Part shown: positions 60,024 to 63,559 of the stretch, one piece after another | Layout of the letters: the number at the start of each line of letters is the position of its first letter | How positions within the stretch are numbered: the first letter of the stretch is position 1 | Assembly: GCF_000737315.1 (NCBI RefSeq) | Contig: NZ_JMCB01000013.1 | Span: forward strand, 248,001-312,000 | Direction of reading: 5' to 3' | Source: Hyalangium minutum | GTDB lineage: Bacteria; Myxococcota; Myxococcia; Myxococcales; Myxococcaceae | Length of the DNA: 64,000 nt | The notes under the pieces: model-generated | Told to the model about the DNA's origin: nothing | Seen by the model: the letters and a program-made list of their open reading frames with translations, nothing else | Database searches by the model: none | Program-made: the position numbers and the translations under genes

Positions 60024-60857
60024 TCAGGAGATGCCCTTGCGCAGCCGCTCCCAGTCGAAGTTGGCGGACGGATCGCTCTTGCGGCCCTTGGGCACTGCCA
60101 CGTCCTTGTGGCCGACGATGTTGCCCATCGGCACGTTGTACTGCTGCTTCAGGTAGCCGGTGAGCTGGGTGAGCGACTTCATCTGTGCCTCGGTGTAGGG
60201 CGTCTTGCCGCCGCCGTCATTGACGATCTCGATGCCGATGGAGCGGCCGTTCACGTCAGTGGGCACGCCGTGCAGCTCGCCCTTGCCCGCGTGCCAGGCG
60301 CGCTTCTGGTCGTTCACCAACTGATAGATCTTGCCGTCGCGGTCCACCATGTAATGGGCGGAGACCTCGGCCTTGGGGTCGCGCATGTGGGCCAGGTCCG
60401 CCGCGCCGTTGTTGGAGGCGGTGTGGTGCAGGACGATCGTGTCGATGTCCGCGCCCTTGCGATCATCGAAGTTGGGTGACGGCGAGTTGACGACGGGGGG
60501 CTTCTGGAACACGCCCGGCTTTGTCTCGGGCTTGGTGGGAGCAGTCGGCCCGCTCAGCTTGGCCAGATCCTTCTTCAGTGCGGCCTGGGTCAGGTCCCCG
60601 TAGAAGCCGGTGGACGGCAGCTTGTGGTCCGCCTGGTACTTCTTGAGTGCTGCCTCCGTCTTGGGCCCGAAGGTGCCCGCGCCCGCGCCCACCTGCGCCG
60701 CCGTCATGTACTTCAGCGCCACCAGCGCGTCCTGAAGCTGCTTCACCTTGGGGCCCGTGTCTCCTTCCTTCAGGCCCGCAGGCGGAGCGGTGAGCGCGGT
60801 GCTGGCAGCGGCGGGAGCACGGGTGGCCGTGGCGGTGGTGCGGTTGATCGTCGTCAT
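60024..60857 (-). CDS. N-acetylmuramoyl-L-alanine amidase (AmpD/Amidase_2) with N-terminal peptidoglycan-binding domain
   Basis: VKQLQDAL...FGPKTEAALKKYQ; VLHHTA, SAHY, AWHAG, SIGIE, GHKDV...KSDP. Confidence 0.93.
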   Translation of the reverse strand: MTTINRTTATATRAPAAASTALTAPPAGLKEGDTGPKVKQLQDALVALKYMTAAQVGAGAGTFGPKTEAALKKYQADHKLPSTGFYGDLTQAALKKDLAKLSGPTAPTKPETKPGVFQKPPVVNSPSPNFDDRKGADIDTIVLHHTASNNGAADLAHMRDPKAEVSAHYMVDRDGKIYQLVNDQKRAWHAGKGELHGVPTDVNGRSIGIEIVNDGGGKTPYTEAQMKSLTQLTGYLKQQYNVPMGNIVGHKDVAVPKGRKSDPSANFDWERLRKGIS

Positions 60858-61009
60858 GGGAGCGTTTCCAGGCAGCGAGGTTGCCGGCTTCTATTCACGG
60901 CGGATTATTACAGGCGGACAGCTCCTGGTAAACAAGGAATCCAGAAGAGTCTTCCAGTATTCCCATTTTCGCCTAAATTGCGCGTCTCTCTTTTTCCGGA
61001 GGTCTCTGC

Positions 61010-61381
61010 ATGCGTCTGTTGGCTCTCGTGGGACTTGTGGGGCTGTTGAGCGGCTGTGGCGTGGGAGTGGAGGAGGAGGCCGCCGCGCCGGCTTCCGAGC
61101 GGACCGAGATGGGCCCGCCGGAGTCGTGGTGCCGCAGCTACACCTCGGCCCAGTACTGCCCGAAGTACATCTGTTACTGGACCGGCACCGCCTGCACGCT
61201 GCCTCCCGCGTCCGTGTCCGGGACTCCTGAGGAGACGACCCAGATGGGCCCGCCGGAGTCGTGGTGCCGCAGCTACACCACGCAGCGGTACTGCCCCTCC
61301 GTGTGCGCCTGGTACAGCTATCCCGCGCCCGGGTACTGCGGCCTGAAGGCCTCGTCGCTGACGGGCGAGCAGCAGCAGTAA
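61010..61381 (+). CDS. Small lipoprotein with two Cys-rich repeats
   Basis: Lipobox LLSGC; GGAGG RBS; two MGPPESWCRSYT-x4-CP-x2/3-C-x-W...C modules. Confidence 0.8.
   Translation: MRLLALVGLVGLLSGCGVGVEEEAAAPASERTEMGPPESWCRSYTSAQYCPKYICYWTGTACTLPPASVSGTPEETTQMGPPESWCRSYTTQRYCPSVCAWYSYPAPGYCGLKASSLTGEQQQ
61107..61279. repeat. 38-bp perfect direct repeat, 135 bp apart (coding duplication)
   Basis: agatgggcccgccggagtcgtggtgccgcagctacacc at 61107-61144 and 61242-61279. Confidence 0.95.
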
Positions 61382-61457
61382 GTCCTCGGGTTCACCGCGC
61401 AGTGAGCACCGCGTCCGCTCCGGCTTGGCTGGAGCGGACGTTTGCTTTTGGGGGCTC

Positions 61458-61486
61458 TTGCCAGCGCGACTCGGCGCGGTTAACCA
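61458..61486 (+). promoter_or_regulatory. Candidate sigma70-type promoter
   Basis: TTGCCA-17 bp-TAACCA; predicted +1 falls on the A of ATG at 61493. The -10 match is imperfect. Confidence 0.5.
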
Positions 61487-61492
61487 TGAGGC

Positions 61493-61570
61493 ATGCGTCT
61501 CGTGGTGTGTGCTCGTCGATTTAGCCGCCCCCCGGCCCCGTTTGGGCGTCGGGAGGCCGTGCTGCCGTAG
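61493..61570 (+). CDS. Putative leaderless leader peptide MRLVVCARRFSRPPAPFGRREAVLP
   Basis: ATG at 61493, TAG at 61568-61570; its last codons overlap one arm of the leader switch helix. Confidence 0.55.
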   Translation: MRLVVCARRFSRPPAPFGRREAVLP

Positions 61571-61678
61571 CGCGCACTCCTCTCGGTAGCGGATCGCCTC
61601 GCTGGCGTGATGCTCGCCCGGACTCGCTGGGGGGGCATTCGAGCTCTTGTCCGTTCCGCTCCCATTCCTGCCGAGAGG
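61524..61678 (+). promoter_or_regulatory. Structured 5' leader with alternative anti-SD/SD pairing (translational attenuator candidate)
   Basis: GCTGCCG(61561-67):CGGTAGC(61584-90) competes with CCTCTCGGTAG(61579-89):CTGCCGAGAGG(61668-78), which covers the RBS; additional hairpins present. Confidence 0.65.
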
Positions 61679-61684
61679 TTTCCC

Positions 61685-62833
61685 ATGTCCGTTGCCATTC
61701 TGAGCGCCGAGGAAGTCCGGCGCGCGCTGTCCGTCCGCGATCTCACCAACCCTGCTGCTGGCCCCCACGCGATGCAGCGCCTCATCGAGGGCGCGCTCGA
61801 GGCCCTGCGCCTCGCCTGGGGCTGCGAAGTTCGTGTCCACCGCCAGAGCCCCATCGTCTCCATCGTCAGCAACTACGATCACCTGCACTACCCACCCGAT
61901 GGCGCCGCGCGGGATGCCCGCTACACGCGCTACGTCTGCGACACCGCGCTGCTGCGCACACAGACCTCGGCGATGATTCCTGGGCTGCTGCGGCGGCTGG
62001 CCGAGGCTCCTCCCGAGGACGTGCTGCTGGCCTGTCCCGGGCTCGTGTACCGGCGTGACTGCATCGACCGGCTCCACACCGGCGAGCCGCACCAGATGGA
62101 TCTGTGGCGCGTCCGCCGAGGCGCCACACTGGGAACTGCGGAGCTTCGCGAGATGATCGAGATCGTGGTCCGCGCCTTGTTGCCGGGACGGGAGCTGCGC
62201 GTAGCGCCAGCGCGGCACCCGTACACGACCGATGGCCTGCAGATCGATGTCCGCGACGGCGCGCAGTGGGTGGAGATCGGCGAGTGCGGTCTGGCACTGC
62301 CCGCGCTGCTGGAGGAGAGCGGACTGGAGCCTGGGCGCACCACGGGCCTCGCGATGGGGATCGGGCTCGATCGCATCCTGATGCTGCGAAAGGGGCTGGA
62401 TGACATCCGCCTGTTGCGCTCGGCGGATCCGCGGATCGCGTCGCAGTTACTCGATCTGGAGCCATACGTCCCCGTGTCCTCGATGCCCGCGGTGCGGCGT
62501 GACTTGTCGCTGGCGCTCGCCGAGGAGGACACGCCCGAGGAACTGGGCGACGCGGTCCGGGCGGCGCTCGGAGACAGGGCGGAGTTGGTGGAGAGCGTGG
62601 AGGTGCTCTCGGAGACGCCGTACCGGGCGCTGCCTCCGGCGGCGGTGGCGCGGATGGGCATCGCGCCTGGACAGAAGAACGTGCTGCTCCGCGTGGTGCT
62701 GCGCGCGTTGGATCGCACGTTGACCCACGAGGAATGCAACGCACTGCGGGATGCCATCTACGCGGCGCTGCATCGGGGCTCCGCGTGGGAGTGGGCGGCG
62801 CGGCCTGTTGAGCGCCCCATACGCTCGCCCTGA
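61685..62833 (+). CDS. PheS-related class II ligase with C-terminal FDX-ACB domain (recalled as the 'SrmL mystery ligase' family)
   Basis: LLRTQTSA, motif 2 PGLVYRRDCIDRLH..PHQMD, motif 3 AMGIGLDRILM...DDIRLL; FDX-ACB RRDLSL...DRTLTHEE; ATG at 61685 after GAGAGG. Confidence 0.85.
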   Translation: MSVAILSAEEVRRALSVRDLTNPAAGPHAMQRLIEGALEALRLAWGCEVRVHRQSPIVSIVSNYDHLHYPPDGAARDARYTRYVCDTALLRTQTSAMIPGLLRRLAEAPPEDVLLACPGLVYRRDCIDRLHTGEPHQMDLWRVRRGATLGTAELREMIEIVVRALLPGRELRVAPARHPYTTDGLQIDVRDGAQWVEIGECGLALPALLEESGLEPGRTTGLAMGIGLDRILMLRKGLDDIRLLRSADPRIASQLLDLEPYVPVSSMPAVRRDLSLALAEEDTPEELGDAVRAALGDRAELVESVEVLSETPYRALPPAAVARMGIAPGQKNVLLRVVLRALDRTLTHEECNALRDAIYAALHRGSAWEWAARPVERPIRSP

Positions 62834-62905
62834 GCAAGGCTGGAAAATAACGTCCCTGTGGCAAGTCGTACCCCGTCGCTGCGGGCGGGGTACGATGGGA
62901 ACGCC

Positions 62906-63559
62906 ATGCTCTTCCGAGACAAAACGCCCCCATCGCGTTCGGAGATCATCGCCGAGGCGGATCGCGCGCGCTCCAAAGGCCGGCTGAAGAAGGCCATCAC
63001 CGGGTACCGCAAGGCGCTGGAGCTGGAGCCCAAGGATCCGGTGGTGCTCGGGAAGCTGGCGCCGTTGCTGGCGAGGACGAAGGAGCATGAGGCCTCGCTG
63101 CAGAGCTTCCGGGCAGCGGCGCAGGGGCATTTGGATAAGGGCTTCGCGGACAAGGCGCTGGCCGTCTACGCGCAGGCCGCGGAGGAGTTCCCGCACCAGT
63201 TGAACCTCTGGCAGCAGATGGCGCAGTTGAACATGTCGAAGGGACACCGGGCCGAGGCGGTGAAGACGCTGCTGCGGGGCCGGCTCCACTTCCGCCGCAA
63301 GACCGAGCGCCGGGGCGCCATCACCCTGCTGCAGGAGGTGCTGGCGCTCGAGCCGACGCTGTTCGAGGTGAAGCTGGATCTGGGGCTGCAGCTCGCCCGC
63401 GAGAAGCACGTGGCCGAGGCGATGACCTTGCTCAACCCGATGGTGCTGGACGCCAAGACGCGCCCTCAGTTGCGCCGGCTGCGGTGGACGCTGGCACTTG
63501 CGTCTCCGAGCGTCGCGGCGTGGGGTCGCTGGGTGCGCGCCGTGGTGCTGGGCCGCTGA
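62906..63559 (+). CDS. Tetratricopeptide repeat protein
   Basis: KAITGYRKALELEPKD and further TPR-like helix pairs; ATG at 62906. Confidence 0.82.
   Translation: MLFRDKTPPSRSEIIAEADRARSKGRLKKAITGYRKALELEPKDPVVLGKLAPLLARTKEHEASLQSFRAAAQGHLDKGFADKALAVYAQAAEEFPHQLNLWQQMAQLNMSKGHRAEAVKTLLRGRLHFRRKTERRGAITLLQEVLALEPTLFEVKLDLGLQLAREKHVAEAMTLLNPMVLDAKTRPQLRRLRWTLALASPSVAAWGRWVRAVVLGR

Follow-up and report, generated by a model that had tools for sequence, protein, structure and literature searches.

A 64,000-nucleotide (nt) stretch of the Hyalangium minutum genome (contig NZ_JMCB01000013.1, positions 248,001 to 312,000; 68% GC), referred to here as the window, carries srmL, a gene for a PheS-related ligase, behind a structured leader. 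We consider it probable that this leader is a ribosome-mediated (leader-peptide) attenuator and that scarcity of Phe-tRNAPhe induces srmL. The leader contains a small upstream open reading frame (uORF) with a single invariant Phe codon that is almost always the rare TTT, the uORF overlaps one of two mutually exclusive RNA folds, the other fold buries the Shine-Dalgarno sequence (SD) of srmL in a helix that covaries between distant lineages, and the window SrmL contains no Phe residue.

A scan of genomes recovered 59 srmL loci from Myxococcota, Longimicrobium (Gemmatimonadota), Lentzea and other Actinomycetota, an alphaproteobacterial metagenome-assembled genome (MAG) and Pseudomonas, and a scan of metagenomes added 80 further srmL loci out of at least 458 confirmed matches. 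The uORF census covered 136 loci, 130 of them with at least 200 nt of upstream sequence, and yielded 121 unique uORFs. Tests between lineages used 50 leaders with less than 70% identity to each other, in which cognate pairs of segments were compared with non-cognate pairs and p values were obtained by permutation. The myxobacterial alignment held 25 leaders, and the covariance model was built from these 25 only.

A small ORF and two alternative folds in the srmL leader

All leaders share the motif CGATTTA..CCCCC, which sits inside a small ORF with a conserved start, frame and stop. A relaxed search found this uORF in 129 of the 136 loci. The seven misses are six loci with less than 200 nt upstream and the Pseudomonas locus L056, and the match in a second Pseudomonas locus (L058) is spurious. 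Among the loci with at least 200 nt upstream, 128 of 130 have the uORF, the two exceptions being the two Pseudomonas-type loci. Its distribution takes in Myxococcota, Gemmatimonadota, Actinomycetota, an alphaproteobacterial MAG and soil metagenomes. The reading frame is conserved: 102 of 118 leaders have an in-frame ATG no more than 42 nt before the Phe codon, compared with 8 and 12 in the other two frames.

The encoded peptides are 14–33 amino acids long and invariant at F-x-x-P alone. Phe is specified by TTT in 116 of the 121 unique uORFs and by TTC in the remaining five, and no uORF has another residue in its place. The codon before the Phe codon is CGA in 98 of 121, with Arg also encoded by CGC and AGA. 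At these two positions, CGA makes up 96% of the Arg codons and TTT 96% of the Phe codons, against about 5% and 7%, respectively, in the background (5.4% and 7.0% in likely genes of the same DNA). The identities of Phe and Arg are thus kept through synonymous codon change. The further conserved positions of the peptide fall in helix arms: the Pro at +3 corresponds to the CCC of a C-run, the Gly at +8 to a GGG, and an Arg-Glu pair to the GGGAGG segment. A search of six leader peptides against NCBIfam matched no family.

Some further features of the uORFs stand apart from these. The bases flanking UUU are conserved as A (83% at −1 and 80% at +3), whatever the next codon encodes, which neither a helix nor Phe sensing explains. 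In one locus (L043:2811-2870), GATTTTCGCGCCCCC can be read in two overlapping open frames that both give F-x-x-P (RFSRP and DFRAP). In the leader of L005, from the Myxococcus/Pyxidicoccus group, uORF codons 2–7 (CCTCGTGGTGAGCG) are complementary to the SD region (CGCTCCACCGAGAGG), so that this part of the uORF could form a second anti-SD that a translating ribosome would mask.

No SD precedes the uORF. Its ATG is placed with the A 7 nt after the −10 element of a putative promoter (Table 1), relatives show the same promoter geometry relative to the uORF, and TANNNT hexamers across lineages mostly end 6–7 nt before the uORF start codon. A strict consensus promoter scan returned no match. If the promoter is read correctly, transcription would start at about 61493, at or beside the uORF ATG and hence upstream of 61590. 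As the uORF has no SD and the −35/−10 pair puts its ATG about 7 nt past the −10 element, it is probably leaderless. Another ATG, 7 nt before that of the uORF and in a different frame, begins an ORF of 12 codons (61486-61524, + strand) that ends at a TAG inside CGATTTAG; it is restricted to a few close relatives and is therefore probably fortuitous.

Downstream of the uORF, an anti-SD arm, CCTCTCGGTAG, and an SD arm, CTGCCGAGAGG, form 11 contiguous pairs, one of them G-U, which bury the SD GAGAGG 7 nt before the srmL ATG at 61685. An earlier note on this DNA had described an 11-bp helix with one G-U pair over the ribosome-binding site (RBS) of the ligase gene; we find it exactly, at 61579-61589 and 61668-61678, within the minimum free energy (MFE) fold of 61490-61700 (−102 kcal/mol, z = −3.2, none of 200 shuffles as good). 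The covariation upstream of homologues that the note suggested looking for is also present: cognate anti-SD and SD arms score 19.4 compared with 15.6 for non-cognate arms (50 leaders, p ≤ 5e-5), with compensatory pairs such as CTCTCCGG:CCGGAGAG, TTCCCGT:ACGGGAA and GCCTCGCAG:CTGCGAGGC. Helices that sequester the SD, of 5–15 bp, occur in all 50 representatives. The SD-hiding helix is real, conserved and covarying across about 50 divergent lineages.

A second structure, fold A, competes with it. Fold A consists of a long-range helix P1 (61528-61533 with 61630-61635), a helix P2 (61541-61548 with 61615-61622) and a hairpin P3 nested between them. RNAalifold predicted it unaided from the 25 myxobacterial leaders, in which 95.8% of the cells in the alignment pair and 34 cells show changes on both sides, compared with 11.1 in shuffles (0/500; slid controls ≤0.095). 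The central P2 pair cycles through C-G, U-A and A-U, and differs even between the window and its closest relative. The covariance model matches once per locus, in every case immediately upstream of srmL; in the window it matches 61514-61640 alone. In the alignment of 72 such matches, which is fitted to the covariance model itself, double changes occur in 20 of 22 pairs and covariation scores 0.242, compared with 0.082 when shuffled (0/500; slid controls ≤0.045). Between lineages, P1 has a mean energy of −30.4 kcal/mol in cognate and −23.0 in non-cognate combinations (50 leaders, p ≤ 5e-5). An SD mimic within the uORF (region 2b) can also pair with the anti-SD; this helix occurs in the MFE folds of two relatives (L005 and L015), and its cognate score of 14.5, compared with 13.4 for non-cognate pairs (p = 0.003), lends it weak support across lineages.

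Fold B combines the anti-SD:SD helix with two local hairpins, 1:2 (61524-61557, already pointed out in the earlier note as a GC-rich hairpin) and 3:4. When it was taken from the window MFE and tested on the 25 myxobacterial sequences, no covariation emerged, as most of the 1:2 and 3:4 pairs do not vary in that set. A U-tract follows the 3:4 hairpin, whose 3' arm is the G-run, in 11 of 50 lineages (about 22%) and is absent from the window. In those lineages the hairpin and U-tract would make an intrinsic terminator, and the same leader family seems to use termination in some lineages and SD sequestration alone in others, including the window. Leaders with a U-tract after the G-run hairpin are L028-L033, L036/37, L041, L042, L044, L059, L073, L078, L083 and L095.

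Table 1. Features of the srmL locus, in window positions.
Feature	Position	Strand	Basis or remark
Intrinsic-terminator-like hairpin with TTGCTTTT	61411..61441	+	14-pair stem, 10 GC pairs, T tail
Putative sigma-70-type promoter: −35 TTGCCA (61458-63), 17-nt spacer, −10 TAACCA (61481-86)	61458..61486	+	read from sequence
Leader peptide uORF, 25 codons, probably leaderless, MRLVVCARRFSRPPAPFGRREAVLP, stop TAG 61568-70	61493..61570	+	conserved start, frame, stop
Proposed sensor dicodon CGA-TTT (Arg-Phe)	61517..61522	+	Phe invariant; each codon is the rarest of its synonyms
Region 1, C-run (Pro codons CCC CCG)	61528..61535	+	5' arm of long-range P1; also 5' arm of local 1:2 hairpin
Region 2a (TTTGGGCG), 5' arm of P2	61541..61548	+	compensatory changes GGGCG:CGCCC, GGGTG:CACCC, GGGAG:CTCCC, CCAGGTG:CACCTGG
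Region 2b, CGGGAGG, SD mimic inside uORF; can pair with anti-SD (CCTCTCG)	61550..61556	+	weak cross-lineage support
Anti-SD arm	61579..61589	+	pairs with SD arm; MFE and covariation
Hairpin P3	61588..61614	+	in Myxococcota and Longimicrobium; absent in short leaders such as Lentzea
Region 3 (CGCCCGGA)	61615..61622	+	3' arm of P2; alternatively 5' arm of 3:4 hairpin
Region 4, G-run	61629..61635	+	3' arm of P1; alternatively 3' arm of 3:4 hairpin
SD arm, SD GAGAGG 61673-78	61668..61678	+	pairs with anti-SD arm; MFE and covariation
srmL, PheS-related 'mystery ligase', 382 aa, no Phe residue	61685..62833	+	NF051887, Pfam, fold

The earlier note had proposed a two-state RNA that hides or exposes the RBS, and this idea is supported, but the competing partner it named was wrong. 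CTGCCG is indeed duplicated, at 61562 and 61668, and GCTGCCG (61561-61567) is able to pair with CGGTAGC (61584-61590). As a competing helix, this pairing is broken in the closest relative (L001) and is not conserved, with a score of 11.1 compared with 10.7 for non-cognate pairs (p = 0.12); the conserved alternative is the pairing of the uORF in P1 and P2. The two further hairpins of the note are present, at about 61590-61615 and 61610-61640; the TCGCT loops they were said to share are not conserved, the P3 loop in relatives being TCGTT, ACCTC, GTCA or TCTC. The uORF, the promoter and the Phe-free composition of the regulated protein had been missed.

The note's suggestion of an unrecognised riboswitch appears very unlikely, and so does the broader class of explanation in which translation of the small ORF is irrelevant, namely a metabolite riboswitch or a leader that binds tRNA or protein (a T-box-like element with UUU-A as specifier, or SrmL acting on its own leader, as ThrRS does). 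Such an element would account for a conserved, covarying structure with two exclusive folds, for the likeness of UUU plus a purine to a T-box specifier, and for the anticodon-binding-type FDX-ACB domain of SrmL. However, the conserved unpaired CGAUUUA comprises two codons of an in-frame ORF with a conserved start, frame and stop, and synonymous changes at these codons keep Phe and Arg. No further conserved unpaired core is present from which a pocket could be built, and the leader varies from 108 to 275 nt across loci with the helices alone retained. A permissive scan of 60800-62200 against Rfam 15 gave no relevant family at E ≤ 10, T-box and Phe_leader included. Individual candidates were rejected as follows: a metabolite riboswitch, with no Rfam match and with codons as its unpaired bases, has neither a translation-independent core nor a known class; a T-box leader has no match in the permissive scan, and its would-be UUU specifier lies within an ORF with a conserved start; and the covariance model of Rfam Phe_leader does not match.

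Three features that mark leader-peptide attenuation are found in the srmL leader. It has a short ORF, predicted from the sequence to be translated, with a codon for the amino acid that would be sensed; mutually exclusive folds, of which one overlaps that ORF, as P1 and P2 are built in part from uORF codons and compete with the 3:4 hairpin for segments 3 and 4; and an output element, in the form of a terminator or SD sequestration.

The SrmL protein and its genomic surroundings

SrmL matches the NCBIfam family NF051887, "PheS-related mystery ligase SrmL", with 520.7 bits (cutoff 300) over profile positions 1-349 of 349, and scores 114 bits against the PheS equivalog TIGR00468 (cutoff 237). Pfam recognises a class II core, tRNA-synt_2d (PF01409, 2.9e-34), and an FDX-ACB anticodon-binding domain. 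An AlphaFold2 model, predicted with database homologues of SrmL, has a predicted local distance difference test score (pLDDT) of 84.9, and its best full-length Foldseek matches are structures of the human mitochondrial monomeric phenylalanyl-tRNA synthetase (PheRS; 5MGV, 3TUP and 3CMQ; E ~1e-22). The modelled fold of SrmL is thus that of the monomeric mitochondrial PheRS type. The arginines of motifs 2 and 3 align with those of PheS, as expected of a class II core. The motifs of the Phe pocket (FPF, QxE and HTS) are replaced, with FPF becoming HPY, QxE becoming QxD and H becoming Q, and GFAFGMG becomes GLAMGIG. Judged from the sequence, these changes may reflect simple Phe avoidance, and may equally reflect a different substrate.

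The avoidance of Phe extends to the whole family. The 382 residues of the window SrmL include no Phe, and among 134 loci 119 have none, 14 have one and a single locus has two; the same is true of the database homologues, with no Phe in 112 of the closest 120. Phe makes up 0.03% of residues in the family, compared with 3.47% in likely genes of the same DNA, from which about 13 Phe per protein would be expected. Positions that hold Phe in PheS hold H, Y, L or M in SrmL. The Pseudomonas-type proteins (L056:476-1618 and L058:3001-4128) form a distant subfamily with 37% identity; they lack the F-x-x-P uORF upstream and are still Phe-poor (3 and 1 Phe).

Within the window, tblastn found no second PheS-like gene. 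The literature searched for SrmL, PheS-like paralogues and Phe-free synthetases yielded no report of this gene, and a 2022 review of duplicated aminoacyl-tRNA synthetases (aaRSs) does not mention PheRS (PMC9437257).

The gene neighbourhoods of srmL vary from locus to locus and give no functional clue. In the window, srmL is flanked by a cell-wall amidase with Amidase_2 and PG_binding_1 domains (60024-60857, − strand) and a TPR-repeat protein (62858-63559, + strand), which have a normal Phe content and are not kept beside srmL in other genomes. A small ORF at 61010-61381 (+ strand) encodes 123 amino acids; its N-terminus resembles that of a lipoprotein, two Cys-rich repeats (MGPPESWCRSYT..YCP...C.W) stand in tandem, and it matched nothing in Pfam or NCBIfam. 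The terminator-like hairpin at 61411-61441 appears to mark the end of the upstream gene and the boundary of the srmL unit. ARAGORN searches of the window and of 60 loci yielded neither tRNA nor tRNA-like genes, and the idea of a dedicated RNA substrate adjoining srmL is therefore unsupported. As the neighbours differ by locus and there is no nearby tRNA gene, srmL looks like a stand-alone unit.

How the leader may respond to charged tRNAPhe

In the mechanism that we propose, a 70S ribosome would translate the leaderless 25-codon uORF from 61493, and it is the ribosome that is the probable effector of the leader switch. With plentiful Phe-tRNAPhe, the ribosome would reach the stop codon, the 1:2 hairpin would reform behind it, and the 3:4 and anti-SD:SD helices would form. 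This OFF state would be fold B, with 1:2 paired locally, 3:4 paired and the anti-SD on the SD; in the window, 3:4 would not act as a terminator. With scarce Phe-tRNAPhe, the ribosome would pause with the rare UUU in its A site and the rare CGA in its P site. It would then cover region 1, whose C-run starts 8 nt after the first U of UUU, and by geometry it would also block re-initiation at the 5' end. Region 2, now free, would pair with region 3 and the anti-SD ahead of synthesis of the SD, and translation of srmL would follow. The ON state would be fold A, in which 2a pairs with region 3, 2b with the anti-SD and region 1 with region 4, leaving the SD free and forming no terminator. SrmL would then probably serve as an auxiliary monomeric PheRS that restores tRNAPhe charging or bypasses it. 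The lack of Phe codons in srmL means that the enzyme can be made under just this shortage, and a Phe-free PheRS-like enzyme behind a leader in which Phe is the sole invariant sensing residue fits induction when Phe-tRNAPhe is scarce.

A model of the nascent transcript agrees modestly with the proposed polarity. In this model, the anti-SD was paired to the uORF with a value of 0.34 in the free transcript, 0.45 with a ribosome stalled at Phe and 0.27 with a ribosome at the stop codon (stall vs stop p = 8e-4); for the window, the values were 0.06, 0.37 and 0.01, respectively.

Several results weigh against the proposed mechanism. At equilibrium the window favours fold B over fold A (−93.4 vs −81.9 kcal/mol, a difference of about 11), and under a stalled ribosome fold B still wins (−73.0 vs −64.0 kcal/mol, about 9), which means that the ON state must be kinetic. 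When full-length leaders were folded at equilibrium with ribosome masks, the SD was mostly paired in every state, an outcome that speaks neither for nor against a switch. Equilibrium modelling of the leaders with a terminator was inconsistent between lineages in polarity, and in one of them (L073) the terminator forms more with the ribosome at Phe. The complementarity of P1 (1:4) has no role in the classical attenuator model. It might arise in long leaders simply as a consequence of the 1:2, 2:3 and 3:4 pairings, an origin that is impossible in Lentzea, where the leader lacks a region 3. The leader has a single regulatory codon, where classical attenuators have runs of them, and Phe sensing alone does not explain the near-invariant CGA and the A after UUU. 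Finally, the pocket of SrmL is replaced (HPY, and D for E of QxE), and SrmL may therefore not activate Phe. Since the equilibrium calculations need a kinetic ON state and the terminator modelling is inconsistent, the polarity of the switch is something that we infer.

With the opposite polarity, fold A would be the default ON state of ribosome-free or fully translated mRNA, and a stall on region 1 would block P1 and turn srmL off at low Phe-tRNAPhe. This arrangement would suit the strong covariation of P1, which needs a ribosome-free region 1, and the equilibrium behaviour of several leaders with a terminator, in which P1 beats the terminator; it would also suit L073, which gives 100% terminator when masked at Phe, and L005 and L015, in which fold A is the MFE of the free RNA. 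We nevertheless regard it as quite unlikely. It would make little sense to shut off a Phe-free enzyme at the very moment when Phe-tRNA is missing, and the known aaRS leaders (pheST, T-box and trpRS1) induce on shortage. Moreover, P2 and the 2b:anti-SD helix can still form when the ribosome is stalled at Phe, and the nascent-transcript modelling favours capture of the anti-SD in that state.

The conservation of the peptide itself bears on another explanation, in which the R-F-x-x-P peptide arrests its own ribosome, perhaps on a small molecule or antibiotic in the exit tunnel, and brings about the same RNA rearrangement. TnaC, SpeFL, the Erm leaders and the RAPP-type arrest peptides offer likenesses. 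F and P are invariant at a fixed spacing, basic residues are preferred before F (R in 102/121 at −1 and in 76/121 at −2), Pro is kept even where a CCT or CCG codon interrupts the C-run (L103 and L088), and one sensing codon is unusual for starvation sensing. However, any CCN encodes Pro, so that the RNA constraint (C-C in P1) and a peptide constraint are inseparable. Residues L, Q, S, I, V, F and C are also found at position −1, and positions +1 and +2 are free to vary. So extreme a bias towards the rare codons CGA and TTT is expected of a sensor of decoding rate and not of a peptide motif, and a Phe-free product fits Phe-tRNA sensing. For these reasons, we think peptide arrest unlikely, and favour attenuation in response to Phe-tRNAPhe scarcity.

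If the leader is such an attenuator, a bolder reading of the whole system becomes possible, although we would not call it probable. SrmL may be a Phe-free 'bootstrap' PheRS of the monomeric mitochondrial type, kept silent in soil bacteria behind a single-codon sensor of Phe-tRNAPhe, which restarts tRNAPhe charging, and its leader may represent an undescribed, multi-phylum class of attenuator built on CGA-UUU. SrmL would then still be made when a competitor's inhibitor poisons the canonical PheRS or when Phe runs out. More generally, the proposed attenuation offers a testable function for a widespread family that NCBI labels a "mystery ligase" (at least 458 confirmed metagenome matches), namely that of an enzyme made when Phe-tRNAPhe is missing and purged of Phe to allow this, and it would add a leader-peptide system that neither Rfam nor NCBIfam contains and that is kept from Actinomycetota to Myxococcota. 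If SrmL is indeed an inhibitor-insensitive PheRS, it bears on natural resistance to compounds that target PheRS. It would also show how a cell can avoid a circular dependence, in which an enzyme that supplies an amino acid itself requires that amino acid for its synthesis.

Comparison with known systems

The mechanism proposed for the srmL leader belongs to ribosome-mediated attenuation. What is new is the single invariant codon in a rare-codon context, the probably leaderless layout, the conservation across several phyla, the extra 1:4 clamp and a target that lacks the cognate residue. Like the leaders of Escherichia coli pheST (pheM) and pheA (pheL), it has a short ORF with a cognate codon and four mutually pairing segments (1:2, 2:3 and 3:4) overlapped by that ORF, with a terminator in some srmL lineages, and like pheST its target lies in the PheRS family. 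Unlike in pheM and pheL, the uORF has one invariant Phe codon instead of a run and is probably leaderless, the main output in the window is SD sequestration instead of termination, and there is an additional long-range 1:4 helix. The element also differs from Phe_leader in that it has no sequence or structure match to the Rfam model and is found in several phyla outside the Gammaproteobacteria.

The closest analogue that has been shown experimentally is the set of leaderless poly-Cys small ORFs of mycobacteria, on which stalled ribosomes block a structure that would otherwise hide the RBS of the downstream gene (Canestrari et al., doi 10.1101/834739). Both systems have a small ORF, probably leaderless in srmL, as the first cistron and respond to amino acid supply, a response that is predicted for srmL. 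The poly-Cys ORFs contain several consecutive Cys codons and precede genes of Cys metabolism, whereas srmL has a single CGA-UUU pair, an aaRS paralogue as its target and a covarying nested alternative fold.

In target, the closest systems are pheST/pheM and Streptomyces trpRS1. According to Vecchione and Sello, trpRS1 is reportedly an auxiliary, indolmycin-resistant TrpRS induced by ribosome-mediated attenuation. As proposed here for srmL, it would be an extra aaRS copy under a leader peptide that is turned on when the cognate charged tRNA falls. The two differ in amino acid and in family, and the activity of SrmL is only predicted; we know of no description of cognate-residue removal from the trpRS1 enzyme. 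Streptomyces trpRS1 is listed among the duplicated aaRSs (PMC9437257).

The protein itself resembles the human mitochondrial monomeric PheRS (PDB 3CMQ, 3TUP and 5MGV) in its class II catalytic core and FDX-ACB domain, and differs from it in sequence (about 23% identity), in having HPY for FPF and D for the E of QxE, and in being Phe-free. Its composition recalls the cognate bias of biosynthetic enzymes, which contain little of the amino acid that they produce (Fasani & Savageau, PMC4209129). In both cases, a protein needed in an amino acid shortage avoids that amino acid. What sets SrmL apart from cognate bias is that the avoidance is near-complete (0.03% vs 3.5%), that the protein is an aaRS-like enzyme and that the avoidance goes together with a proposed sensor codon for the same residue.

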